A DNA stretch of 64,000 nucleotides, taken from Phyllobates terribilis. Lineage: Eukaryota. Positions 38,930 through 64,000 of the stretch are shown in pieces. Every line of letters begins with the position of its first letter. Within the stretch, counting starts at the first letter, position 1. The translations under genes were made by a program, and so were the position numbers. A model generated the notes under the pieces. The model was not told the DNA's origin and did no database searches. It saw only the letters and a program-made list of their open reading frames with translations. Location: positions 426,932,001-426,996,000 of the forward strand of contig NW_027362767.1 of assembly GCF_046119375.1 (NCBI RefSeq), given 5' to 3'.

Positions 38930-42555
<3,626 letters not shown>

Positions 42556-45209
42556 TATGTGGAAAGATGAACTAAAAAAATATATGTATAAATCTTAAAA
42601 TGGGAAAATTAAAAAAAAAACCTTCTATAATAGGTATGCATTTTGGACCTATTCAGATTTAAAAAGTTTGTCTAATCTTTCTTCAGGAGCGCAGCGCTCC
42701 TCTGCCTCCCGGCTTCCTGCTGTCGGGGCGCAGAGCTCCTCTGCCTCCCGGCTTCCTGTGGTCACAAGTGCAGCGCTCCTCTGCCTCCCTGCTGTCGGGG
42801 TGCTGCGCTCCAGATGATGATTGAGTTCGGACCAGCTGAGCGCCCTGTCCTCCCTTGCTTTTAGCAGGGGTAGCTTTGTCTCTGCAGCAGTAAAGGATCA
42901 CTGATCTTGGCAGGATCTAGTGAGCTGGGAAGCTTCTGGCCTGCACTTACTAGCTCCAAAATAAAAAGATTGCAAGAATGCAATTGTGATGGCCGGTAAC
43001 TTAGCCAACAAGAAGTAAACTATGAAATTAAAAATCCCTCCTGTCTAGAGAACAGAGGATTTTTAATAAAAATGCAGAGTTGCTTTGTAATTTTTCCTAT
43101 TTAAAAAGTTGAGAAAACCCCTTTGTAAAAGGAAGATATTCTGTATGCGGATGTAAAAATATGGGGTTGTCTGATATTAGTCTGTTACTTCTTTTCTATA
43201 TTAAGAAGTCCCAATCTGTCCTGGATTACATATAAAATGTTGCATAGATTTTGTAAAAATAAATAAAAAAATAAATATTGTAAAAATAAATGAGGTCCTG
43301 AAAAAAAAAAAAGTAAAGTCTGTATCACTTTCACACCTAAAAAAATAAATGTGTCAAAAGAAAGAGAAAAAATTATTTATTGTCTGACGTTAGGAACATG
43401 AAACATGTTTTATTTTATTTTTTTACAGATTTCCACCATCAAGATAAAAAATAATTAATAACACAAAACTTTTTTCCAACTTTTTATTTTTTTTTTGTCA
43501 CATTTTCAGCAATGTAAAACCTAGAAAAACCTGAATACTGGAAAATATCAGATGTTGTATTCAGTGATAAAACAATACAGATTGAGATCAAACAGGTCAA
43601 TTATTAAAGTTGTTTCAAGGTCCTTTAGGAAATAAATACGAGGACATACACTTTTTCTTTATTGCTGGGTTCAGATATAGCAGCGGTGCCTGTGCTGCAC
43701 AAGGGATCACTGCGTGCAATATTCCTCCTGAAGGCCTCCTCAAAGTAGTGATTCTCCTTTGGGGACATTTATTTTCTTAAATGCATGTAATAGGGTCTAA
43801 TAAATAATCATTTTTGCAATTGGGGTTAATTAACACTTTTGCATAGTCTGCCTTCTATAGTCTCTGGCATCAGAAAGTCATCTGAGAATCAGTCAGTCGT
43901 CCCCTTATGACGATCGGACGGAGAGATTTTAGCTTTTTTACGTGTCTTTTTCTGCGCTTATAGACCTCATCAAAGTTGAATGTGCCAAAAAACAAAGAGC
44001 CCGTTAAAACCAAACAGTGCAATTATTTGCAAAAATTATTATTTTTTTGTATTTAAGTAAAAAAAAATTGCCCTTCAAAACCCAATCACATGGCGGGTAA
44101 TTGGCAAAAATTCATAAAAAAGCTTGTTGTAACCATCGATGTGTGTAAAGCTGATAGTTTGGATCGTTTATGTTGGCATGCAAATAATCATGGGTAATGT
44201 GGTAAAATAATCAGGATGTGCTGCCGATTATAGGCAACTGTATGGAGACAATATGGCCATGTAACCGATCATTCCACCCCGGACAGCTTGTATCGGCCCA
44301 CGTGATGGCTCACTACACGAGTGCATTGTATATAGTTCTTTTCTCTCCTCTCCCCATTGAAAACACATAAACAGTCGGCCAAGCCAAATATTCATGTGTA
44401 TGAAGGAGTCGGTAACGGCTGATCGATATCTAAGGTGTGTGGACTCCTCAAAGGGGTTATCCTGGATTGGAAGTGATCGGCACCAGTGAAGTTACGACCC
44501 GCACGCTTGCGTGGTCATCTGGGTAATGTGCACGTGTCTCCTCAGGTGCGCGGGTCGTAACGTCATCGGCACTGTTCACATGTAATGTGGGAATGAGCGG
44601 CATCGGATAACCCCTTTAAGGTTAGGGTCATAAATGTGGCTTTTGGTGCAGTTTTAGATCCAAGGCCAAGAGTGATTTCAACAGTTTGGGTAATATCAAA
44701 TACTGCAAGTGTATTTCCAGCCCAAGTTTTTGAAACTTCTCAAGAAAACTACAAATCTCTCACATTTCCTATAATATAAAAAATACACAAGGAATAATGG
44801 GGTAAAGTCATTGTATGTTAAAGAAAAGCCAAAAAGACACCCAGCAGATGGCAGGTCCAGCGTCACGAGAGCTATGTCTCTGGCGGCTCCGCATGGGAAA
44901 ATGGAATGTGTGAACGATGGTCAATGATTACGTGACGGCACATTAACAATTTATTGCACGATTCTCGTCAATGTACTGTAAATCCTTATCTGCCATCGGA
45001 TCGCTTATTTCCTTACACAATTACTGGTGTAAACGAGACCTAAGTCAAAGCTGCAGCAGGTAAAAGGAGCGGACTAACAAAGCTGGCGAAGATGGAAGAG
45101 ATGACGGTGACTTTTACATCACGTGTCACGGACATGTGCATAGTTTATGTGGCGTTGCTTCTCCGTCCTCATCTATAGAATATTTCCTCCATATTCCTCT
45201 ACTTTACTT

Positions 45210-48200
45210 TCAGTCGCCATTCTTCAGGAGTTTATAGTAAGCCCCCTCCTCGTTCTTTACCAGCTCCTTGTGATTTCCGCGTTCTACCACCCGACCTCCG
45301 TCCAGAACCAGAATCTGATCCGCATCTCGCACCGTGCGCAGCCGATGGGCGATGATCAGAAGTGAGAGGCCGGGGATATTCTGTACAGACTGCTGGATCT
45401 GCGGAGGAGACAGATGGTAATGACGGAGAGAAACAGATCACATCCCCCCAATACAGCCGGCGTCGCACCGCACCTCGTGCTCAGTCTCTACATCCAGACA
45501 ACTAGACGCTTCATCCAGGATAAGTAACTTAGGTTTCCGCGCGAGCGAGGGCGATGCGCTGCTTCTGCCCGGCCCCCATCTGAGCCCCGCTATCTCCAAC
45601 ATCTGTGGAAACAGGAAACTGCATTTCTGTATCAAATAATATAATAATAATCTGATTAAAAATGTCAGATGTAAAAATACTGCACAATATTGTATTAAAG
45701 GGGTAGAAGAGTTATGGTAAAAACCTGATGATTTTGGCCAAAAAGTTGGATCGGATAACCTAATGTACATGGGACCTCCAGATCCGAGACAACTTCCTAC
45801 CTCTAGATATGTGGCCAGTAATGTGAATGAAGTAATGTATGAAAAACAACATTTTTTTTCTCTTTATGGGTTCGTTAATTCTATATTTTGATGGACTGGA
45901 CTTTTATGAATGTGACAATGGCACCAGTGATTGACAGCAGCATGTAAATAGGTATACAGCAGTGATCGGAGGTAGCTCTGGTCGCTGCTGCTAACGGCAG
46001 ATGCCGGCTGTATATCGCAGCTCCAGAGCCTGCTCCATACATGGAGACCCAACGCAGCAAGTGCTGCTACGTCAGGAAGGTGTTTATATGCAATGTACCA
46101 TAGTAATGATAGTTTATTATAAACAGTAAAAAATAAAATGTAAAAAGTAAAAAAAAAATATATAAAAATCTTTTATCTCGGCTGTGGAATGTAATGCTGA
46201 TATCACTGACTTGTATCGTAGCCCTGGTCCAGGTCGCTGATAAAGTTTTCAGCCTTCGCGTTCCTTGCGGCCTCTGTCACTTGCTCGTTGCTTTTGCTGT
46301 TGAGTCCGTAACTAATGTTGTCTTTTATTGTTCCAGCAAATAAAACAGGATCTTGGGCGACCAGCGCCACCTAGAGGGAACATTATCAGTATATTGTTTG
46401 CAGCCACTTACAGTTAAAAATATCTCATTAACATACTTAAAGAGTAGGGATGAGGAGACCCGTGGAAGTTCGGGTTCTGGTACCCGACCCAAACTTTATA
46501 CCAAAGTTTGGTTTGGGTACCAGAACTGTACCCAAACTTGAACCAGAACCTGAACCCCATTGAAAACAATGGGGCCCAAACTTTTGAGTGGGCAAATTCT
46601 CTCCCTCTCCTTCTCTCTCACTCTCCAGACTTCCCCCGGAACTCTGAACATTGCAACAGACTTCCGGGTGAAGTCCATGTTCGAAGTTTAGCACCGGACT
46701 TCTAAGTTCGGGTTCGCTCATCTCTATTCAAGAGTAACTAAACTTTTTTGTTTTTTTAATTTCGTTATTGGTCAATTTATGATTTTTTGTAAATACTCCA
46801 TTATCTTATTTTGCTTCCTTCTGACTTTATCACCACGCTGAAAGTGCTTGTTTGTCTGCCTAGTTCTTGCAGTCTTGGTAACTGTTTTGTACTGCAGGCC
46901 TAGCAAAGATCCGTTCTCTGCTCCTTTATAGTCAGTATAATTCCTGTCTGAACATAGATGGGGGCAGCAGAGACGCTCACACAGGAGAATGGATCTTTGC
47001 TGAACCTACAGGTCAAATCAGCTTCCAAGACTGCAAGAACTAGGCAGACAAGACAGCACCTTCAGCGTGGTGATAAAGACAGAAGGAAGCAAAATAAAGT
47101 AATGGAGTAGATGAAAAAAATTCATAACTTTACAAAGACTGATCAATGATTAAATAAAAAAATAGTTTAGTTACTTTATTATTAAAGGGGATGTCCAGAA
47201 CTATGAAATTGATGATTTTTCCTTGGGACAGATCATCAATATGCGATTGACATCCCGCACCACCACCAAGCTGTTTGTCAAGCATAAAATGTTCAGAGCT
47301 GGAACAGCACAGCTCCACACACCGTGTTATGGCCGTTCACAGGTACTGCAGCTCAGATCATATTCACTTTATTGGCAGCCGAGGACGGCCATAACACATT
47401 GTACCTAGCTGTTCCGGCTCCGTACACAATGTACATCCTGTGGCTACGAGACCTACGAAGCAGGTGACACCCAGCACCGCACCGATCCGATACTGGTGAC
47501 GATGGTGGTAATGGAGCTAAGCTTCTCCTGTAGGACAATTGTAATGAATGAGCCCCAGAATTAAAGGAGCATTAAACATACAACATAGTATGAATGAAGC
47601 ATATACTAATAAGTAACATCATCCACATGTAAAAGTATGAAGGTTTCTAAATTTTCCATGAAATAAGTGGTATAAAGCAGGTGATCCTGGGAGTGGACAA
47701 TATTCTGGATTTCCGGTCACATTGAGGAACATAGCGTGAAACATTAATATATAACAATCGATGGCCGTCAGCTGCTGAAGGTTCATGTGCGCTCGATGCT
47801 CCGGATATCTGGTCCTACCTTACTGTGCAGATACTGATGGTCGTACTCGGCCAGAGGTCTCCCATCCAGAAGGATTGCCCCGCTCTGGGGCTCGTAGAAT
47901 CGCTCCAGAAGGGACACACAGGTCGTCTTACCCCCTCCTGAGAGTCCAACAAGAGCGGTGACGCTTCCCGGGGGAAGACTGAAGGATAAGTCCTGTGGGT
48001 CATAAAATAAATGATAGGGGATGAATATAATCAAGAGACAATGAAAGAGAGGACATGTATGGAAAGTATGTGAGGTGTCAAAGTGACGTATAAAATGAGA
48101 AGACTCAGAACATCAGAAAGGGGCCCGGATCTCAGATTCTGGCGGAGCTGTGTGTGAGGGGGCGACTGACTGCTCATGTGAAAGCTAAGCCGGCCCCTTT

Positions 48201-51200
48201 GTCTAACAAAGCCAACTGGCTGTTGAAATGCGCAGTCAGCTAGCCGCCTTCATACATGGCTCATTATGGGGGCCCACCTAATACTATTTCTATTCAACAT
48301 GAGCTCTATCGGTACACGCCACATTAACCGGCCAATATGATGGGAATGCCGACTCTTTATAGTGAGTGGGATCATTGGGCTCAGCTCAGTCGTAGTTTTT
48401 GGCTCTTCATTTGAAGGAGTTTTCCACCACTATTATACGACCTCAGGAGAGATCATCAATATCATATCGGTGTGCGTCCGACACTCGGCAGTCGCACCAG
48501 TCAGAAGTTATTTGCACCGGCAGCGGACGGAAGTAATCCTTGAATCGAGTTGCAATGTGTAGCAGCCGCTACTGGATACTGCAGAGCAGCCGCTAGTCAA
48601 AAGTGGCCGCTGCAGTGAATAACAGATGAGTGGTGTAGGGGTCCTGTGTGATGGACCCCCACCGATCTGATGTTAATAACCTCTCCTAAGGACACTGGTA
48701 AGAGGTCTTGTGCTAAAAGAGTCATTAGTTAGGCCTGAATACACATCAGAGAAAATTTGGAGGACTCCACAGGGACATCAGTCTGTCCAATGTGTATGGA
48801 GGCCACATAATGGCAGATGTCAGGGAAGAGATGGATTGAGTGTGTACCTGTATGGGGGGGCCAGGAGGGATAGCTGTCGTTATGTAAGGTGTAGAAAATA
48901 CAGGGTGTTGTGTGGTTTTGTGTTGTGCACACTCACCTGCACAGCCGGGGTATCTGGACGGGATGGATAATAAAATGTAACGTTCTTGAACTCAAATTCA
49001 CCATGTAAATCGTTTGGGCAAAGTGATCCCGATGTGGAGATCTGAGGCTCCCGATCCAGGTACTGAAAGATCTTGGAGGCGACTCCTGCGGAATGGGTTA
49101 TCTCACTGAGCATGTGAAAAAGGCTCTGAAAAGCAAAGGAGGAAAAAAGGTCAAGACCAGTGAAACGTGACAGTGCTCCATACCATGGGTATCCTTGCCA
49201 GTCTTGTGTACTAATGTTCAGCCCCCATTTACTTCAATAGGACCAGGGTCGCAGTACCCGAGAATGGCCACTACACAGTGTATGGAGCTGCTTATATACG
49301 TATATATACATACCGTACAGACCAAAAGTTTGGACACACCTTCTCATTTAAAGATTTTTCTGTATTTTCATGACTATGAAAATTGTACATTCACACTGAA
49401 GGCATCAAAACTATGAATTAACACATGTGGAATTATATACTTAACAAAAAAGTGTGAAACAACTGAAAATATGTCTTATATTCTAGGTTCTTCAAAGTAG
49501 CCACCTTTTGCTTTGATGACTGCTTTGCACACTCTTGGCATTCTCTTGATGAGCTTCAAGAGGTAGTCACCAGAAATGGTTTTCACTTCACAGGTGTGCC
49601 CTGTCAGGTTTAATAAGTGGGATTTCTTGCCTTATAAATGGGGTTGGGACCATCAGTTGTGTTGTGCAGAAGTCTGGTGGATACACAGCTGATAGTCCTA
49701 CTGAATAGACTGTTAGAATTTGTATTATGGCAAAAAAAAAGCAGCTAAGTAAAGAAAAATGAGTGGCCATCATTACTTTAAGAAATGAAGGTCAGTCAGT
49801 CCGAAAAATTGGGCAAACTTTGAAAGTGTCCCCAAGTGCAGTTGCAAAAACCATCAAGCGCTACAAAGCAACTGGCTCACTTGAGGACCGCCCCAGGAAA
49901 GGAAGACCAAGAGTCACCTCTGCTTCTGAGGATAAGTTTATCCGAGTCACCAGCCTCAGAAATCGCAGGTTAACAGTAGCTCAGATTAGAGACCAGGTCA
50001 ATGCCACACAGAGTTCTAGCAGCAGACACATCTCTTCAACAACTGTTAAGAGGAGACTTTGTGCAGCAGGCCTTCATGGTAAAATAGCTGCTAGGAAACC
50101 ACTGCTAAGGACAGGCAACAAGCAGAAGAGACTTGTTTTGGCTAAAGAACACAAGGAATGGACATTAAACCAGTGGAAATCTGTGCTTTGGTCTGATGAG
50201 TCCAAATTTGAGATCTTTGGTTCCAACCACCGTGTTTTTGAGCGACGCAGAAAAGGTGAACGGATGGACTCTACATGCCTGGTTCCCACCGTGAAGCATG
50301 GAGGAGGAGGTGTGATGGTGTGGGGGTGCTTTGCTGGTGACACTGTTGGGGATTTATTTAAAATTGAAGGCATACTGCACCAGCATGGCTACCACAGCAT
50401 CTTGCAGCGGCATGCTATTCCATCCGGTTTGCGTTTAGTTGGACCATCATTTATTTTTCAACAGGACAATGACCCCAAACACACCTCCAGGCTGTGTAAG
50501 GGCTATTTGACCAAGGAGGAGAGTGATGGGGTGCTACGCCAGATGACCTGGCCACCACAGTCACCAGACCTGAACCCAATCGAGATGGTTTGGGGTGAGC
50601 TGGACCGCAGAGTGAAGGCAAAAGGGCCAACAAGTGCTAAGCATCTCTGGGATCTCCTTCAAGATTGTTGGAAGACCATTTCCGGTGACTACCTCTTGAA
50701 GCTCATCAAGAGAATGCCAAGAGTGTGCAAAGCAGTCATCAAAGCAAAAGGTGGCTATTTTGAAGAACCTAGAATATAAGACATATTTTCAGTTGTTTTA
50801 CAATTTTTTGTTAAGTATATAATTCCATATGTGTTAATTCATAGTTTTGATGCCTTCAGTGTGAATGTACAATTTTCATAGTCATGAAAATACAGAAAAA
50901 TCTTTAAATGAGGTGTGTCCAAACTTTTGGTCTGTACTGTATATATATAGATAGCCTTTGGAAAACATGCACCATTGTGATTTCTTTGGCCTCGTACCCG
51001 TGTGTAGTCGCTAGACTCCATCTGGTAGATGATGAAGGACACCATCGCCCCGGTGGTCATCTCTCCTTCAAGGATTAATGTGTGTCCATAGCATAACATG
51101 GAAACCTGCGACCCCAGATTGATGATCTGAAGGGAAGAAAAGCGTCTTAATCATCAGGGCACACAGATTATCACTACTATCAACACAGATATCAGTCACA

Positions 51201-54200
51201 TTTAAGTCGTTTTTCTCTCGCTGTGGCCACGAACACATCTAATTTTGAAGATAAGGAGAACGTTACCCCCTGATTGCATTGTGCCCTCTGTACAGATGGT
51301 GGAGGATAACGCTATGGGATGTTATCAGGGGGCGGCTTCGGCCCCTTAGTTCCAGTGAACGAACATCTTAATTCTTACAGCTTTTTGGGAACAGTTTGGG
51401 AAGGCCCTTTTCTGTTCCCATGACTGTGCCCAATGCACAAGGTCCATGTAGACATGGTTGGGGGAATTTGGGGGAAGAACATGACTGGTCGCACAGAGCC
51501 CAGCCTACAACTTCATCCAAGAATAGTGATTGTGAGCCCGGCCTCTCCCCATCATCATGGTCTGACCTCACAAAGGCTCTTCTTGATGAAGGGGCAAAAA
51601 TCTCTAGTAGAAATTCGATGGTCAGGTATCGATTTCCGCTCCCGTTGTTCTGTGGATTTGCACGTCTCACTGCCGCGGATCCGCACACGGACAAGGCCAA
51701 TTATCATTCAATGGGGTCAATTCTCTACTATTCCATGTAGAACATGTATTTTCCCATGAATGGGATGTAGACTGTGGTTGGATTTCACTCGAATTCTACA
51801 GTAAACGCCAAGTCAAAATCCGTGTCCTATCCGACAAGTGTGAATATAGGCTAATAGCTTATTTGCAGCCATCTCGTCACACACAATGCAAGCACCAGGA
51901 ATAAGACATGTTTCCTCACCCTTATTAACAGGAGATACAGAGCTCTGGTCATGTCCCTCCACATCTGCAGATTGTGAGTCTTTTTCAGGGACGCTTCATA
52001 TCTCTTCACTTCTTCTTGTTCAGCGGCAAAACTCTGCACCGTTTTAACCGACTCAATAATCTCTTTTGCGAGATCACTAGACCTGGCAATCGAATCCTGC
52101 ACCTTCTTCACAAGATCCTGAGAGGAGAAATTAAAAAAATGAGTCAGTAAATTTTGTAGATTTGAAAATGCATATTTGTGCAAGGAATACTTAAAAAACA
52201 CTCAAGTAAAAACATTTTTCCATCTTCTATATTATAACTATTTGACAGGAGCCGCATAATCATCATCAGTAACTGTGATAGTACTTGGTCTCTTTTCCTG
52301 AGAATTGCCTGTGTGCTCACGACGTAGCTCAGATGACTGAAATTGTGTTAAGTAATGCAAGGGATCACTATAAACTTTTTTTCCTTTTTTCACACCAGTG
52401 GTTTTGTTGGTTGTGGTCAAAAGGGTATGTTCCAAAATACCGTCATCCAGTTGAAAACAATTCAGAACTGCGATACATTGTGGGAAGGTTCTGCTGGCAT
52501 TTGTTATGCATTCTGAGTATTTTACATGTTACTCATGGTCTTTATTGCTCTGATTATGCACCTTTATGGGAGCTTTATTCCAGCTCTGAATGATATGGAG
52601 CCCTAAAACGACTACGTGCATGAGACCTAAAAAGAGCACGTTCACACAGAGGTTTCGGTTTTTTAACATGGATTTTGAAACTGATCAACTTCAAAATCCA
52701 CATTAAAAACAACTTAGAATACTCCTTGAATACTTTTTTATGTGGATTTCGAAGCGGATCTGCTTCACAATTCACATAAAACACTCTGCGACCACACCCC
52801 AATTGTCTAAAGATGGTAACGAAAACGAAAATGAGCAGCTAAAATTAATTCAAAAAGTATGATGAAAAATGAAGGCTGTAGACTTTTTCTGTTACTGATT
52901 TTATAGCAAATCCACAATGAAATCCACATTACATGCAGATTTTGAAGCTGATTTTGATGTCAAATATGTTGTGAAAATCCACACCAAATCTACAGTTTGT
53001 CAATTTACCCTTAAACAATTAGGCATTTTTAATCTAATCAATAGTATTAGATGCAATGATTATAGACCCATAAGGAAATCGTTATTGTCTGTCCATTACA
53101 TTACGATATACAGTGAGTGATCTGTCCCCGCACATATACGCACCTCGTGATATTTGTTGTATATGCTCTGAACGATGGAAATTAGTGGCATGCTCACAAA
53201 GGTGAGGAGTGTAAGACGCCAAGACAGAGACAACATGAAGAGGTAATGACCAACGCATTTTATCAATGTCCGCAGGGTTATGTTCACATTGGCGGCAATA
53301 GAGCGACTCACAAGAGACGTGTCATTTGATAGTCGAGAGGAGACGTCACCTGTAGTGAAGAGTAAAATGTGCATTAACTTATTTCTAAAGGCTCATTCAC
53401 AGGTCTGTTTTTCACATACGAGTGCTATCTGTGTTGTTCACATATGTAATTTTGTAGTCCAGGCAAAATTGTGGAGACACGTCTGATATCGTTCTGAGTG
53501 TCGGATCAAACTGGGCAATGAAGATCTATGGTCCATGAAAATATCAAATCACATTCAGATGTCATCCAAGGGGTGTCCATTTTTTACGGACGGATAGATA
53601 AGAAAACTTTTTTCTTTTTTTCTCATCAGAGAAAAAGTGATGAAACTCTGACCAAACTCTGACCAAACACAGACCAAACTCTGACCAAACTCTGACCAAA
53701 CTCTGACAAAATTCTGACCAAAAAAACTGCTAAAAGCAAATGATGAAACTCAGTCAGTTTTTCTTCAAGATCAAAATATCTGACATCTGAACGAGGCCTA
53801 ACTTTTTGTAAAACTTAAAGTTATAATTTACTAAATTCAGTCACAAATGTTCATATAGAATATGAGCTTAAAATTGGCTGTGATCAAGGGATCGCTGTGG
53901 ATTTTCATTTGATTCATAAGCCTATGATACACGTGCCAAACTTATCTGTCCCCTACAGTCAGCATAAGTCGTAAGTGTGTGATTTTGCCATACAGTGGGT
54001 TGATATGTGTGGGCTTTCCTTATTATTTTTGCCTTTTAGGAAAGAGTAGACTGATAGGGACCCCAGAATAAAAATGGTATTTTAATAAGTCAGGCTAAAT
54101 GTTTTGTTACAATGGGATTCACTGGGCGATGTCCGCGACTCGGTGTCTATGTAGTCACATGTATCAGAGGCTTCTGTTGGAGGATATAAAATATTATTTC

Positions 54201-54371
54201 TCAAAATCTATCTCCAACAAATTAAAAAAAGCAAAATGTGAGGAAGGTCATTTTTAGTTTTACATCTGCAGTATATATGCCATGTATTTAATGCACCTAA
54301 AAAAAAACAGAAAAATGACCAGCTGACTGCATTATATACAAACAAAACTAGATAGATAGATAGATAGATAG

Positions 54372-54414
<43 letters not shown>

Positions 54415-57322
54415 TAGGATATATATTAAAATCAATAACAATAAAGAACACAAACATTCTAAATTCTAATCTCAAGCCTTTTTGAGAACATGATAGCGAA
54501 TATCATCTTACAGAGTGTTAGGCACAATGATTGCCCCCATAGCAGTGCCCATAGGACATGTGTGTATACAAGGTTCTGTGTCTCACAAGTTACAGTATCG
54601 TACTTTACCAGTTTTAGTGGTTTCAAAGAAGGCAATGTCCTGTCTAATGAACGCACGGAAAAGGAGACGTCGCAGACGTCTGGTGAGACGATACATGGAG
54701 AATATGAAGAGTCCTCCTCTGCAGCCTGCAGAAATAGTGCTAAATAAAGAGAAAGGTAAGTCTCAATATCCAGTATTACATCTGTATGAAAACACATGTA
54801 GAAATATTTATAGAATGAATGGCCACTTTATTACTGACACCCATCTAGTAGTGTGTTAGACCTTCTGCCTTCAGCAATTCCTGGTGGCAGAGATCCCACT
54901 TGTTGATGTGATCGTTCTGCAGGAATTTCGGCCATGTGGATTGGATCACTAGATGGAGGTACTGACAGGCTGTCAACGGCCCATTGTACTTTGTCCCAGA
55001 GATGCTCTACAGAATTAAGATCTGGGAAATTTAACATCCAGGAAACAAAGAAAAACTCACTGCAATATTTCTGTAAGCAACCCAAGACTATATGGCTGAT
55101 GTGGCTTGGGGCATTGTCCTTCTGCCATAGAGGAAACAGCTGCCACGAAGAGATGATCGGACACAATACTGAAGTAAGTCCTACTGTTCAAATGTCTATC
55201 CACAGGTATCAGTGGCAAATGCCAAGAAAACCTTTCCCTACCATTACTGTACCTCCACCAGCCTGACAGGAAGGCGTTATCCATCCACAGGTATCAGGGC
55301 ATCATGGTGCACCAAGAAAACCTTCCCCCACCATTACTCCACCTCAATCTGCCTGACAGGAAGCGGTCATTAATCCACAAGCATCAGTCAAATCTACATG
55401 TACTAAAAAAACCTTTGTCCATCAATACTCCACCTCAATAAGTCTGACTGAAAGGGGTTGTTCACCAAAAGGTATCAGAGGAGCCAGAGTGCGCCAAGAA
55501 AACCTTCCTCCACCATTATTCACCTCCATCAGCCTGACAGGGTGTGTTCATCCATCTACATGTATCAATGGCGCTATGGTGGACCATGAAAACCTTCTGA
55601 ACATTATTACTTCACCTCAATCACCCTGACAGGAAGAGGTCTTCATTTCAGCTCTAATCATGAAAGGACTGGTGTTTCTAATGAAGCGGCCATTCAGAGT
55701 ATATTGTATTTATGTTCAGTACAGCAATAGTAAATGTCTGTCCCAGGAATAACTCGGCAAGAATTTACCACGATGGGAACATGCATAAAACGTAGAGCTG
55801 AGCAGGAAGGATTGCTCTTCCCTGGTGTGGCGTCCAGTCTGGTCCTCCACGGCAGTCTTCACATCTGTGCCCGACATCCTGGGTACTTATTGCACTTTCA
55901 AGCACTTTCTGAGTGGCGTGATGCACGACATGACGTCGCAGGATTTAGCAGGCGACAGTGGTACCCAAATAGCTGGGCACAGAAGTGAAGACTGCAACAT
56001 AGGACTGGACTGGGTGGCCGCGCAAATCCTTCTGCCCAACACTACAAAAAATTAATACTCACAAAAAAAGTGCTTATATCAACCATTAAGAGTCAAGTCT
56101 CCACAGGAAAAATGGCAGCTGAAATTTGCCTGCTTGCTGACCTTGAATTTCAGAGTTCTCTAGTTTAATCATGAGGCCCAAGAAGTCTACATGTGCTCAC
56201 TTTGCCATATGTCTCACCCACCTGGAGATGGTCAACACAGCCATATAAAGTATAGCCTCCAGGAACTCGGCCTCCTTGTAATTGTTGGACAGGTTGTCAA
56301 TCATCCGACCCATGTAGTAAGGAACCCACATTTCAACTGTAATAAACAATAAGATACTTACTTTCCTCCATAGAAGAACAGAACTTTCCATATAACTTTT
56401 AGTCTAAACAACATATTCAACCTGTCGAAATGTTCTGACTATTTCTAACCGTTATCAGTTTCCCTCTTTACACAACTACCTCTTCACATATAAATTAGCG
56501 TTGCGTGATCGGACAACCAAAGTTCCCTTCACACGAGCCAGTAATTTGCTCGTAAGAACGCTCATTCCCGATCATCTTTCTGTGTACACATGCCATCGAT
56601 CGGCTGAAGAACGAGCAAAATGAACGAGCCTGTATTACAGAACATAGAAGAACCCATGTTTCTCTATTATTAAGGTGGAGATCAGTTACTTTCTCTTGTA
56701 AGACAAATGGCTGCAGCAGGAGCCTCTCCCCTCTGCTCTGTAAAAATTTCCACTCCCTGCCTGTTGTAGAAATTTTGCAGAAAATCAAGTTATATCTCAT
56801 AAAAAGAAAAACAGTTTTGCAAAACTTACATGTCAAAGCCAGAAAAAGGAAAACAAAAGCCGAGGACAGGTACGGCCAATCCCGCTTCGAAAGTTTGACA
56901 AGTCTGATAAAATTCTTCCTGTCTGTCTGTTCTCGTTCGTCTCTGCCGGAAGTTTCTTTTTTGTTAGTAGGAGGTAAAATCAGATCCCAGACCAGACATG
57001 ACAATGGCAGAGGCATATGATAGAGCAGAGAGCTGGAGAAAACAGAGGATAACTCGGGAGACTGAGAGGTGAGAAAGAACCTGAGGGTCTGGTATAAAGG
57101 AGGCGCGAAGCCGAGGGTTAGAGCGAAGGGCAAGCGGGAGGAGATCCAGCGTGGACGGGGCAGGAGGTTGGATATCGCTACAAGTATTGGAGCTTTAATA
57201 AGGTAGACCAGCCACACAGCGAGAAAGAGATCTACAGGATAATATCTGACAAGGCTGGAAATTATGTACGTGAGTGATGAGTCCAGCAAGACGAGAAGTG
57301 GAAGAAAACATAAGGAAATCAT
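45210..57322 (-). CDS. TAP2: TAP2 (ABCB3) peptide transporter subunit, 11 coding exons, frameshifted in exon 10
   Basis: Exons 56830-57322, 56222-56336, 54609-54739, 53144-53349, 51920-52117, 50998-51126, 48937-49125, 47819-47992, 46211-46370, 45474-45602 and 45210-45398, all GT-AG. TAP2-type motifs GCRGG, RALYLL, Walker A GLSGGGKT, degenerate signature MGAGQ, Walker B LILDE, IAHRL. The exon sum of 2113 nt is not a multiple of 3. Confidence 0.93.
46445..46726. mobile_element. hAT-like MITE in TAP2 intron 8
   Basis: TAGGGATGAG ... CTCATCTCTA; 8-bp flanks TTAAAGAG and TTCAAGAG. Confidence 0.75.
49313..50939 (+). mobile_element. Tc1 family A copy with near-intact transposase, in TAP2 intron 6
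   Basis: TA flanks and long TIRs. ATG at 49727, a single in-frame TGA at 49760-49762, then 338 open codons with a DD34E triad ending FEEPRI*. Confidence 0.93.
53643..53722. repeat. 11-bp tandem repeat (ACCAAACTCTG, about 7 units) in TAP2 intron 3
   Basis: Direct reading. Confidence 0.85.
54349..54415. repeat. (GATA)n microsatellite in TAP2 intron 3
   Basis: About 16 units with one interruption. Confidence 0.95.
54790..55640 (-). mobile_element. Old Tc1 transposase relic with degenerate tandem duplications of about 90-bp
   Basis: WQKDNAPSH, FPDLNSVEHLWD and GGGTVMVGKGF remnants; about five diverged copies of CCAAGAAAACCTT...CCATTACT...GCCTGACAGG at 55190-55640. Confidence 0.65.
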
Positions 57323-60300
57323 TGTGAAGGCTGAAGAGTAACACTGAGACCTCGACGGAAACCTACAAAGAGAAAGGTCACAAGTTAGAGGCCAAATGTA
57401 CAGTAAACTCTACTACAACTCACAGGATCAGCACAACAACAGAAAGTCCGAACCAAGGTTGTAACTCTTGGAAAACATATATGCAGACCTAAGAAGTTTG
57501 TCCAGTGATAAAAAAAAATGTAAGGGGGAAAACTCACCCTCACCGATCCACGGCAGGGCCCGTTTCGAATCATCCTGAGTCTTTGTAGGTCTTTACTCGT
57601 TTCATCCCATCTCCAGTAGTAGGGGCCAGAAAAGTCAAAGTTACAACTGACCCCTTTAAAAAATAAATTTTAGTCCCTGGAAAATCCCTGTAAATGGGTC
57701 TAAGCGCAGGATAAAGTATTGACAGAGACCCAGATTCCATCACTGGTCATTTTCTAGAGGTCTTTCAACCATGGTGCTGCAGCCTACACCCCGAACCCAT
57801 GATGATGGTGAGCGGTGGTCCACCCCATCTCCTGACAGGCAGCGTTCTCCAGTTTCAAGGACCATGCTCAGAGCAGTACACCAAGCAGCTGCAGATAACT
57901 CTGGTCAGGAGACCCAGCGGTCAGGCCAAGTATTCCTCTCCGAGCACGGTCTATGTTTCACAGACCGGACGTATAAAAGCAGCATTATACACAGTATAAG
58001 GTAAAAGCTGTCAATCAGCCGCAGCAGGATGGTGACATCCACAGCTCAGGAATATCGATGACTAAGTAACCCAAAGCTGGTATCGGGGTCCCCGTCACTA
58101 CCCTTGGATAGGGCAGCAGAACCCGCATGAAAATTTCCTTCAAAGCAATTTTCTCACCTTTTTAGGCTCATTCACATCAGAATTAGTCACAGAAATGTAC
58201 AGGACTTCTCTATATACTCAAATTGTGTTTGTAAACTTTCTCGCTCTCGCATGTGATACAGAAGCAACCTAAGATTTTTAGTTTCAGAAAAATCCTCACC
58301 GTGTAAAACCTATCCTAAAGCCCAATCTCGCAATAGTTCTCAGAAGAAACCGCCCTCATCAGTACTGGCGGCCATGAGAGGCACATTTACAAATCGACTC
58401 TGTAAATCCTGATAAGTTTTCTGGCTGGAATCCAGCATCAAATCTCAGGACGCAGATACAACTGCACGGACGCTAACGCCGGCATCAGAAACAGATGGGA
58501 GAACAGAGCTTTGAAACTCTAAAAATGAGTGTAGGAGATTTCTATAAAGCCCCTCGACGCGGCCCAATAATCGGCCAAAGGGCATTAATTGGAGCTCATT
58601 ATGGGCATAAATCGTCCTTCACTTTCTCATTAAATTGTTTTAAGCCCCATTCTGCACTTTTATTCTTAAAAGGCGCCCTGTCACTAGATCAGAAGTAGCC
58701 GGTTTTTGTTCTTATTTTATCTCCACTTCTACCTTCAGTATTCCACGGTTTGTTTGTTTTTAAATCTGCAACATGGTTCCCGAGATATGGGCCTCCTTAT
58801 TTAGTGCTGATGATTTTTATAGTCTTTAAAAGGGGAGTGGCTCACAGGTTCCTCTGGGGCGTGTCTTTAGGCTGTTCTACATAATTAGTATGTAAACCAC
58901 ACCCCCTTAGTAAAGACCATAAAAATTAGCACTTAATAAAATGGCTCATATCTCTGGAACCGTATGGCGGATTTAAATATGGAAAAAAGATGGATTACTC
59001 AGGAGAGTAGTAGGAATAAAATAAGAAAAAAAAACTAAACACTTTTCACCCTGTGATGGCACCCATGTAAAAAAAATAACAAAAATTGTTAAAAAATTTG
59101 GGGATAATAACTTTAAGCCCACAGCCTCACATGGGCATATTATAGGGTTCACATTGTAGTGTTTGATTTCATAGAGATGTATTACAGTTGAATTCAGTAC
59201 GAAAACCCTCCAGAAAAAAACATGGCTGCTTTATCGGATGCCATTGTGTGGATGGTTGTGGCAAGACTTAGCTATATACTTTAGAGTAGAGTAACGCTGT
59301 GTGTGATTTCATCCTTTAGGAACCTCTATGGGCCAATAGCTCGGTACATACTATGCCCAGCAGAGGCTGTTCGGCAGCACACAGACGCTATGCAGCACGC
59401 TACACTCTCCGTGTAACAGCGTTCGCCTGTCCGCTATCACATGTTCACGGCTGCTTAACATACTTGACAACAGTTATAGTTATTAAAGGATCATCCTAAA
59501 AGCTGGATCACAAAAATGTCAGAGTGAGTGAAAATGTGCATTACAATGGGGGATTTACGATAACCCCCCGGCGCTTATATATTTAGCGTATTGTGCTGTA
59601 TATGCATAACACAGGGGTGGCATAAGCGCAAAAGGAGTTTCCCATCATCACCAGTCGTTCAACCTCTCAGATGCTGCAACCTACACAGTCTGCTGCATCT
59701 AAGCGGTTAGATAGATGGACAATGGTCAACTAGATACCTTAAACACGCCGCTGTGATGATGGCGACCGTATCATTCATTGTCCTTAAGAGATCTCACAGA
59801 TCTGGTGTATAGGTGAGCCTGTAAGGGGGTGACAGGGGCTGCCATGTGTCTCTCCCTCTCTAAACAGTGTTTATACAAGGTGTACGGTTTTATTACATTT
59901 TGGTGACTATATTAATATATGAATCTGCATTGTTTTCATAGGTACTAATGTACACAGTTAATGTATTGTGATTAGTGTATAATGTTATTTATATATGGTG
60001 TATAGGGAAAGCATAGGACCCTGGCTGGGGTATAGTTAGTGATGGAGCCATTGGGGCTGAGGCAGTGGTGGCCTATTACTATATAGAGGATGAGGCAGAG
60101 TGTAGAGAATAGGACGTGCAGTGCACGCTATTACTGGGTGAATACCGCAGCTCATTGCTGAAGGGAGAAGTTTGCCCAGCGACCGGCGGAGACGGTTGCT
60201 GATTGGTCCAGTTAAAAAAAGGAGGAGGAGTCTGGGCCAGAGGGGAGCAACGGTTATTCCTGTCAGGAATCAGTCCTGTCAGAGCAGCAGTTGCTGTTGG

Positions 60301-60753
60301 ACGGGAGAATCAGCTGCCAGGTTATTATTATCACATATTAAACTATGTGGAATGACGTTTACTTTTCACTAAGATGGCGGCGTCTGGGGAAAATGAGAAA
60401 AAAGCTCCGGCTCTGGGAAGAAGGCGAGGAAAAGATGAAAGCTGGGAACACTAAACATGGCGTCTGATCGCCGGGGGGGTAGGTTATAAAGTGGAGGACT
60501 GATGGTACGAGGATGGCACAGGTTAGGAAGGGGTTAAAGAGTGAGATCGCATCTCTGGAAGACGCACAAAGGACCCTGCGACTGCCTGAATATTATACAG
60601 CGAGACGCAGGAACATCAGGAAATATACAAAAATAAATGAAAATAGATTTATATATATTGCTTACTTTTTTTTCATAATTGTTTATATATAAAGATATAT
60701 AGATATATGTGTCTGTAAATATTGTGCTGTGGAATATGTTGCTACTATATAAA

Positions 60754-60801
<48 letters not shown>

Positions 60802-60972
60802 AAGAGTTGTAAAAAAAAGTAAATAATATATATAAATACATTATATTTATTTTTGTATATTTTCCAATGTTCCAGCGTATCGCCGTGTTTGTTTTATTTA
60901 TTTTTTATTTCTTATTTAGTTGCTTTTTTACTATTACTTTTTGGATTATTGTAACTCACTATATATTTAGTA

Positions 60973-61020
<48 letters not shown>

Positions 61021-61379: not shown

Positions 61380-61760
61380 ACCCTGCTGGGAGTTGTAGTG
61401 CTCACTGTCTGTACTCACTGCGCCCTCTCCGCGGAGTTTCTGCGCCCGAATCTTCAGCGCTGTCGCCCGGATGCTGCGGCTGAGCCGGGGTCCTGCGGGT
61501 GTCTGCGCCCGGGTGTCGGTGTCTGGGTGTTCGGGTGTCGGGGCTCGGGCTGTGGGGCCGCCCCGTGCTATTATTGTATTACATTAGCCGCAGCTTTCAC
61601 TTTCGATCTCCTGTTGATGCCGCGATTCCGGGAACAGCAGCCGGGGGTTTCTGTGTCCTGACAGCAGATCACATCGGATCAGAGGCGGAGAGGATCGCAC
61701 CGAGCGAGCGAGCGCCGGACATCAGCCTGGTGCCGGTTCACACTGTCTGGTGAGGCCGCA
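61380..61760. promoter_or_regulatory. Shared TAP2/TAP1 CpG-island promoter with ISRE/IRF-E, GAS and ZNF143-type motifs
   Basis: CTTTCACTTTCG (61594-61605), TTCCGGGAA (61626-61634) and GCTGGGAGTTGTAGT (61385-61399). Minus-strand donor GTGAGT at 61418-61413 and plus-strand donor GTGAGG at 61750. Confidence 0.78.
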
Positions 61761-61924
61761 TTTATGCATTTTATTTATTTTTTTGCTGTTTTTCTTTGCA
61801 CCATTTTGGGGTCCTTGAAACTTTCCCATCTCTTTATTCCATTTTTGTGGGGGGGAGTTGATCTGGTCGGTTATTATATTAATACTTTATTAGGAGGAGC
61901 TGTGGCGGTGTCAGATGTATTTGT

Positions 61925-62290
61925 GGTCCCAGAGGTCACATTGGTGGTCCCAGCGGTCACATTGGTGGTCCCAGAGGTCACGTTGGTGGTCTCAGCGGTC
62001 ACATTGGTGGTCTCAGAGGTCACATTGGTAGTCTCAGCGGTCACATTGGTGGTCCCAGAGGTCACATTGGTGGTCCCAGAGGTCATGTTGATGGTCCCAG
62101 TGATCACGTGGTGGTCCCAGCGATCACGTGGTGGTCCCAGTGGTCACATTGGTGGTCCCAGAGGTTACGTTGGTGGTCCCAGCAGTCATGTTGGTGGTCC
62201 CAGTGGTCACATTAGTGCTCTCAGCCGTCAAGTTGGTTTTCACCAGCGGTCATGTTGGTGGTCCCAGCAGTCACCTTGGTGGTCCTTAGC
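61925..62290. repeat. 21-bp minisatellite in predicted TAP1 intron 1
   Basis: Unit GGTCACATTGGTGGTCCCAG(A/C), about 17 units, degenerating rightwards. Confidence 0.9.
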
Positions 62291-62899: not shown

Positions 62900-63392
62900 A
62901 TGCATCCCGTCTACTCATTGTGCTGCCTCTTCGGGGTGGACTATGCCACTCTACACCTGCTGACCCTTCTTTTGCCCCCAAACCTCCTCCAGACATGGGC
63001 ACTGGGCCTGGTACGACTGGTCGTCTTGATGCTTGGCGTTCGTGCAGTGGGCCGAATATCAAAACTGCCCCCCTGGTTACAGGGGAATCCATTGCTGCTG
63101 TCCTCTGCCGTCCTCACCCTGCTGGTGCCATGTTGTGCGACCATCACTGCTGTTCTGTTACCACGGGCCAGCGCCGGCCTCCTGCACCGATCGGGGCACG
63201 CGGACCTGTTCTTCTACTCGTACCTGATCACGGTGACGTCCACCCTCGTCTGGCACCAGCTCTTCCTGGAGGATGAAGACGAGGAGGACGAGGCGGAGTC
63301 GTCGGCCTCAGTGTGGAGGCTACTCGACCTCCTGAGGCCCTATGGCTGGCGGTTCCTGTGGGTGTCCGTGTTTCTGGTGCTGTCTTCATGGA
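62900..63392 (+). CDS. TAP1: TAP1 (ABCB2) first coding exon; the rest lies beyond the window
   Basis: Acceptor TTATCAG at 62896, ATG at 62900, hydrophobic TMD0, acidic linker, then SVWRLLDLLRPYGWRFLWVSVFLVLSSW and a phase-1 donor GTGAGT. The LVLSSW end matches TAP1 (VVLSSL-GEM) better than TAP2 or ABCB9. Confidence 0.75.
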
Positions 63393-64000
63393 GTGAGTAT
63401 TGTTCTCTGGTGTCTACCCCTCAGTTTCTTAGGGACGCAGTCAATTTTCATTTTTGCGTTTTCGTTTTTTTTTTCCAAGAGCCAAACCTTTTTTCTTTTC
63501 TGTCCCCACAGCCACACGAGGGCTTGGTTTTTGCAGGACAAGTTCTAGTTTTGAATGACACCCTTCATTTTACCACATAATGTAGTAAAAAATGGGGAAA
63601 AAAAAGTTATTTTGGGTGGCAATCTGCAGCTTTTATTGGTGCCATACTGGGGTATTTATGATGTTTTGATCACTTTTTATTGCATTTTTAATAACAGTAA
63701 TTCTGGCTTTTAGATTTTTTTTATCTATTTTCTTTCATTTACCTAATGGGTTAAATAATGTTAGATTTTGATAGATCTGACTTTTCCTCATGTGATGATA
63801 ACAAATATTTTTATTTTTTTAGTTTCTTTATTTTTAATTGAGGAAAGTGGGCGATATAAAGTTTTATGTTTTATTTTTATTTCTTTACTATTTTCAAATA
63901 CTTTTTTCTTACTTTATTTTCTAGTCCGCTTAGTGGAATTGAACCTGTGGCATTGTTGGATCACTTGTACAATATAGTGTATAGTGAAAATAATGGTCTC

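Follow-up and report, generated by a model that had tools for sequence, protein, structure and literature searches.

A probable young null allele of the antigen-peptide transporter gene TAP2 in the reference assembly of the frog Phyllobates terribilis

Introduction

The consensus ATPase site of the antigen-peptide transporter is formed by the Walker A and Walker B motifs of TAP2 together with the signature motif of TAP1; the catalytic residue, E631, lies in Walker B, and the gamma-phosphate is contacted by the H-loop of TAP2 (PMC12422388). In humans, TAP2 deficiency is recessive and surface MHC class I is strongly lowered, with some homozygotes being symptomless (PMC13177779). The sequence described here resembles the human TAP2 loss-of-function alleles of bare lymphocyte syndrome type I (MHC class I deficiency) in that it carries a truncating TAP2 mutation; it differs from those null alleles in that the break comes late in the protein, after the signature motif and ahead of Walker B, and in that it is known from a reference genome sequence. 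In anurans the usual gene order is Tap2-Tap1-Psmb8-Psmb9-MHCI, and the family to which this frog belongs has been reported with a single core class I gene (PMC10210626).

The analysis covered a window, i.e., the whole stretch of 64,000 nucleotides from positions 426,932,001 to 426,996,000 (forward strand) of contig NW_027362767.1, in the assembly GCF_046119375.1 of Phyllobates terribilis. All coordinates given below are those of the window. A preliminary description, made from the letters of this stretch, had proposed that a TAP2 gene in it lacks 8 nt of exon 10.

Structure of the gene

Open frames and splice sites define a gene of 11 coding exons on the minus strand, from 57322 to 45213, in which every splice site is canonical (AG/GT). 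Apart from exon 10 the exons are all open, as had been noted previously.

TAP2 coding region, 45213..57322, minus strand: exons 57322-56830, 56336-56222, 54739-54609, 53349-53144, 52117-51920 and 51126-50998
TAP2 coding region, rest, minus strand: exons 49125-48937, 47992-47819, 46370-46211, 45602-45474 and 45398-45213
TAP2 exon 11, 45213..45398, minus strand: H-loop IAHRL and C-terminus; intact, and unreachable in the window allele

The coding lengths of exons 1 to 11 are 493, 115, 131, 206, 198, 129, 189, 174, 160, 129 and 186 nt, and those of exons 2 to 9 presumably match the lengths of their human TAP2 counterparts. The coding sequence adds up to 2110 nt (1 mod 3) and its first stop is codon 623. 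The junctions of exons 8 to 11 were confirmed by spliced contigs from two sequencing runs, so that the last of them, 45474/45398 between exons 10 and 11, is present in transcripts; exon 11 strongly matches ABC nucleotide-binding domains at their ends. Immediately upstream of the start codon, at 57323-57345, there is a good acceptor (ctttgtag), which suggests that a separate 5'-UTR exon lies further upstream, possibly at the putative shared promoter at 61380-61760.

Identity as TAP2

Judged by its sequence the gene is TAP2 (ABCB3), the antigen-peptide transporter subunit, and its product is predicted to transport peptides into the ER as a heterodimer with TAP1. The nearest database protein is a fragment of 330 residues (P0001) from the poison frog Ranitomeya imitator, 88% identical across exons 1 to 4, which marks the gene as that of a dendrobatid-like frog, and the relatives that carry a name are solely called antigen peptide transporter 2; these include the coelacanth protein (54% over 481 residues, collinear) and that of Labeo rohita (45%). 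The frog gene is thus a collinear half-transporter, 45-54% identical to these vertebrate orthologues. The half-transporter architecture is seen in the match of exon 8 to PF00005 and in the PF00664 domain carried by the 88%-identical fragment; in addition, the 622-residue piece and the C-terminal piece of the frog gene are collinear with TAP2 proteins that bear both PF00664 and PF00005.

Frog exons 3 to 8 match residues 205-546 of human TAP2 (chain 5u1d_B) in order. When exons 3 to 7 were compared with human solved chains, the summed scores were approximately 197 bits for TAP2, 173 for ABCB9 and 54 for TAP1; TAP2 was the best chain for exons 3, 5 and 7, ABCB9 was slightly ahead for exons 4 and 6, and TAP1 was far behind. 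By these scores TAP2 appears to be the closest of the three, far ahead of TAP1 and, by a modest margin, ahead of ABCB9 (TAPL). Two regions depart from what is common among the relatives. The TMD0 of the frog protein is lineage-specific, with five matches, one of them close, among 1.8 billion representative proteins; and the signature motif is degenerate (MGAGQ, 45560-45574), whereas the TAP2 of the coelacanth and of two fishes has the canonical LSGGQ. The human motif, which we take to be LAAGQ, is degenerate like that of the frog.

In Ranitomeya imitator (GCA_958301615.1) the orthologue is found on a contig of 369,855 nt as two adjacent models, one of 330 aa (ABC_membrane) and one of 317 aa (ABC_tran), which probably represent one gene that the annotation has split. 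Genomic data from this species were left out of an earlier study for suspected rat contamination (PMC10210626).

The lesion in exon 10

Exon 10 has a good acceptor (ctgtttccacag) and a GT donor, and its features in the window are the following:

TAP2 exon 10, 45474..45602, minus strand: 129 nt in the window versus 137 nt in other individuals
Exon 10 motifs, minus strand: signature motif MGAGQ and Walker B LLILDE
Premature TAA, 45529..45531, minus strand: codon 623, made by the frameshift, 55 nt ahead of the final exon junction
Rest of exon 10, out of frame, 45474..45537, minus strand: RKPKLLILDEASSCLDVETEHE, comprising Walker B, its catalytic Glu and the D-loop region
In-exon AG, 45590..45591, minus strand: 13 nt into exon 10, a hypothetical acceptor that would restore the downstream frame and lose the signature motif

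In the phase set by exon 9 the exon reads N-VGDSGAQMGAGQKQRIALARAET-stop, and a second frame (...LARKPKLLILDEASSCLDVETEHE) continues stop-free into exon 11. The preliminary description had reported an exon of 129 nt, a TAA at 45531-45529 and a Walker B motif in another frame, and our reading of the exon agrees on each of these; likewise, the gene model gives the product of 622 aa without Walker B, D-loop and H-loop that had been deduced, and both the exon reading and the gene model place the stop 55 nt before the last junction.

The size of the gap was obtained from alignments to PDB chains and TAP2 orthologues, Pfam being too weak on the short pieces of exon 10 for this purpose. The out-of-frame remainder matches the Walker B region in ABCB proteins and in TAP2 orthologues and directly abuts the upstream piece: on human ABCB4 the two pieces cover residues 529-549 and 550-571 with no gap or overlap, and they abut likewise on the TAP2 of the coelacanth (483/484) and of two fishes. 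In the window DNA, 8 nucleotides are common to both pieces and are read in two frames. Since the pieces abut without a gap and 8 nucleotides are read twice, exactly 8 nt are absent and nothing else is disturbed. The spacing from the signature motif to Walker B in vertebrate TAP2 orthologues is the same as in the intact frog alleles described below, and the window allele is 8 nt short of it.

As a result, Walker A, the Q-loop, the signature motif, Walker B with its catalytic glutamate, the D-loop and the H-loop do not share one frame in the window, where the frame is lost after the signature motif and ahead of Walker B; in the alleles of three other samples all these motifs lie in one frame. 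From this difference it follows that the window holds a broken allele of the TAP2 gene and not a working TAP2.

Intact alleles in other individuals

Contigs of four public runs were compared with positions 45100-48200 of the window. These runs were read as Logan contigs, in which minor variants are dropped, bubbles are popped and depth is a mean per contig. In an independent DNA sample (X10), a contig of 475 nt that covers intron 10, exon 10 and part of intron 9 has eight additional letters behind 45538. Two further runs with the same species label (X8 and X5) gave long contigs in which three introns are skipped at GT..AG boundaries, and which are therefore transcripts; these contain the same eight letters, so that exon 10 is 137 nt long. 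The additional letters are GCGCGAGA on the plus strand, with depths of 5.4/5.4 in X10, 46.2/46.2 in X8 and 30.6/30.6 in X5. The intact exon of 137 nt reads ...IALARALARKPKLLILDE and the protein has 705 aa.

These observations demonstrate that the species has an intact TAP2 gene which is transcribed in other animals. They also bear out, at 45538/45539, the earlier proposal that 8 nt are missing. The letters that had been put forward, GCCCTCGC, were not the right ones, the real ones being TCTCGCGC on the minus strand or any of eight equivalent rotations; nevertheless, the peptide predicted from them, ALARALARKPK, agrees exactly with the translation of the intact allele (...GAGQKQRIALARALARKPKLLILDEASS...). 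It had further been stated that reads or cDNA with the extra 8 nt would speak against the deletion. Such sequences exist, in other individuals only; they document a working gene in the species and do not make the deletion unreal.

Among the individuals there are allelic differences at 45530, 45156-45160, 45285, 45324, 45327 and 45450, which indicate that TAP2 is polymorphic in Phyllobates terribilis. An insertion of CTC behind 45160 is common to X10 and X5, as are SNPs at 45156 and at 45285, and X10 has further SNPs; in X5, a T>G change at 45530 replaces Lys by Gln just before Walker B, as read in the intact frame.

An alternative is that the window holds a young duplicated pseudogene of TAP2, as the preliminary description had also considered, and that the intact sequences in the other runs come from a second, functional locus. 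Duplications of TAP2 are indeed reported for a newt and, among anurans, for some Megophryidae (PMC10210626). On the other hand, a second TAP2 was found neither within the window nor among the source-sample contigs at a likeness of at least 85%, where the deleted form appears with no intact twin. Moreover, the intact contig of X10 has the same flanking introns at approximately 99% identity, as expected of an allele, and the gene appears to sit at the place expected for TAP2 in anurans (PMC10210626), the adjoining TAP1-like frame being putative. A pseudogene copy is thus very improbable.

Origin and age of the deletion

On the minus strand the intact sequence is CTCGCGC-T-CTCGCGC, i.e., a direct repeat of 7 bp with a period of 8, and the deletion leaves a single copy:

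Retained CTCGCGC copy, 45539..45545, minus strand: the junction can be placed anywhere across the copy, 45538/45539 being the choice of the aligner

Eight equivalent deletions of 8 nt all yield the window sequence, and the microhomology is 7 bp. The deleted segment comprises one copy of the direct repeat and the spacer, as replication slippage would leave it. In the intact DNA a GC hairpin of 5 bp is possible across the repeat, with -7.0 kcal/mol versus -2.4 after the deletion. In its sequence pattern the deletion is the standard signature of slipped-strand mispairing; known small deletions of this kind (microhomology-mediated) show the same loss of a repeat unit plus spacer and the same hairpin joining the repeats, and in this respect the frog allele is a textbook case with nothing unusual. 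The proposed course of events is that slippage between the two 7-bp copies, held together by the short GC hairpin, would have given rise to an 8-bp germline deletion in exon 10, and that the resulting frameshift would stop translation after the signature motif.

The deleted form itself is found in runs of the presumed source sample (S1). In one of them (X1), a contig of 1912 nt shows no differences from the window and is without the eight letters. The deleted junction was also looked for in a run index, with a 60-mer chosen so that all of its 31-letter words cross the junction. In this search, which drew on two sampled words only, the 60-mer occurred in four runs, all from sample S1, whereas the 15 other runs listed under the species label were without it. 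A slip of the assembler was discarded as an explanation, given that the junction is present in read-derived contigs of these four runs and so was not made by the assembler. The support for the deletion is independent of the assembler, though not of the sample S1 or its sequencing chemistry (probably a single one).

A systematic artefact must also be considered, in which a polymerase slipped at the hairpin and repeat during amplification or sequencing of the long-read library of the source sample, the gene of the animal being intact. The confinement of the deletion to the S1 runs would agree with such an event, as would the haplotype of X8, which is otherwise identical and has the 8 nt; in addition, a site of this kind, with a direct repeat on a GC hairpin, is prone to slippage both in vitro and in vivo. 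Against it, the identical junction occurs in four separate runs, and the X1 contig combines zero mismatches over 1.9 kb with a depth of 5.7, which is like that of the neighbouring unique contigs (5.5-7.6). The errors of accurate long reads occur mainly in homopolymers and are not clean losses of 8 bp in all molecules. Likewise, a short-read DNA library and two RNA libraries based on RT-PCR cross the site without trouble. For these reasons the artefact is considered distinctly unlikely.

The reading that we favour, with a probability of about 0.8, is that a real germline slippage deletion of 8 bp has left the reference animal with a young TAP2-null allele that is private or rare. Of the three readings offered previously, it is the null haplotype that finds support, and the run contigs speak against both the young pseudogene copy and the assembly error. 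The recent age that had been suggested for the lesion also stands: across exons 8 to 11 and the 3' end, the X8 transcript differs from the window by the 8 nt only, so that the deletion sits on a haplotype which still circulates intact and the lesion is young. By comparison, X10 and X5 differ from the window by several SNPs and a 3-nt indel.

Zygosity was sought from contig depth and run size, an approach that was rejected: the 'million letters' given for a run are the size of its contig set, and the popping of bubbles together with a depth averaged per contig would make an intact second allele of the source animal invisible, so that zygosity is unreadable in these contigs.

Predicted consequences for the protein

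The product of 622 aa would retain TMD0, the transmembrane core, Walker A, the Q-loop and the signature motif, and would be devoid of Walker B with the catalytic glutamate, the D-loop and the H-loop. Because it ends before Walker B, such a product could not form the consensus ATPase site jointly with TAP1, and a nucleotide-binding domain truncated at this point is unlikely to fold; the deletion allele should be null. The premature stop is 55 nt upstream of the junction between exons 10 and 11, and the threshold for nonsense-mediated decay is approximately 50-55 nt; since the stop falls exactly at this limit, the mRNA is a borderline candidate for decay.

A way in which the allele could escape being null is the use of the AG located 13 nt into exon 10, which would give a nearly full-length protein that keeps Walker B and the H-loop and has a scrambled signature region. 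The arithmetic works, as had been pointed out before, and holds as arithmetic on the sequence only; the alternative frame is open across exon 10, and the TAP2 signature belongs to the degenerate, non-hydrolysing site of the transporter (PMC12422388). Nevertheless, a good polypyrimidine tract accompanies the normal acceptor; the two transcripts seen (both being from the intact allele) splice to that acceptor and neither uses the inner AG, and approximately 15 residues would be replaced, the signature helix included. Rescue by this acceptor is hardly to be expected, and a null allele continues to be the preferred interpretation.

Implications

One practical consequence is a trap for annotation, as the reference assembly will give a truncated, 'low quality' or pseudogene TAP2 despite a working and transcribed gene in the species; comparative MHC studies that score the presence of genes from the reference assembly would be misled. 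The allele would also be a natural null of the subunit that bears the only hydrolytic ATP site of TAP and, if homozygotes exist, class I-dependent immunity could be studied in an amphibian. It is rather unlikely that the reference frog is homozygous, or that the population or captive line from which it comes has the allele at high frequency, which would mean a viable, naturally TAP2-deficient amphibian; if this were true, it would be a natural knockout testing the dependence of anuran immunity on classical MHC class I presentation. Otherwise, this is an ordinary private loss-of-function variant such as every individual genome carries, with no lost gene and no new kind of biology.

Neighbourhood and other features of the window

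An open reading frame on the plus strand at 62900-63412, in divergent orientation to TAP2, resembles the first exon of TAP1; it gave no match among solved structures. In the interval between TAP2 and this frame, at 61919-62285, there is a tandem array with a 21-bp unit, 17.5 copies and 83% matches; several of its frames are open and read as GHIGGP-like repeats.

Intron 8 of TAP2 contains, at 46445-46700, a very high-copy short interspersed repeat. In the source DNA run its summed depth reaches approximately 125,000, when unique sequence is at about 6. This repeat is abundant in the transcript runs too, shows many rearranged and inverted joints, and looks like a SINE- or MITE-like element. Downstream of TAP2, on the minus strand at 39628-40625, lies the remnant of a Tc1/mariner-type transposase (HTH_Tnp_Tc3_2, E 1e-10), with a weak match to DDE_3 in an adjacent, shifted frame. 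Finally, (TA)n arrays are located at 60746-60798 and 60960-61019.
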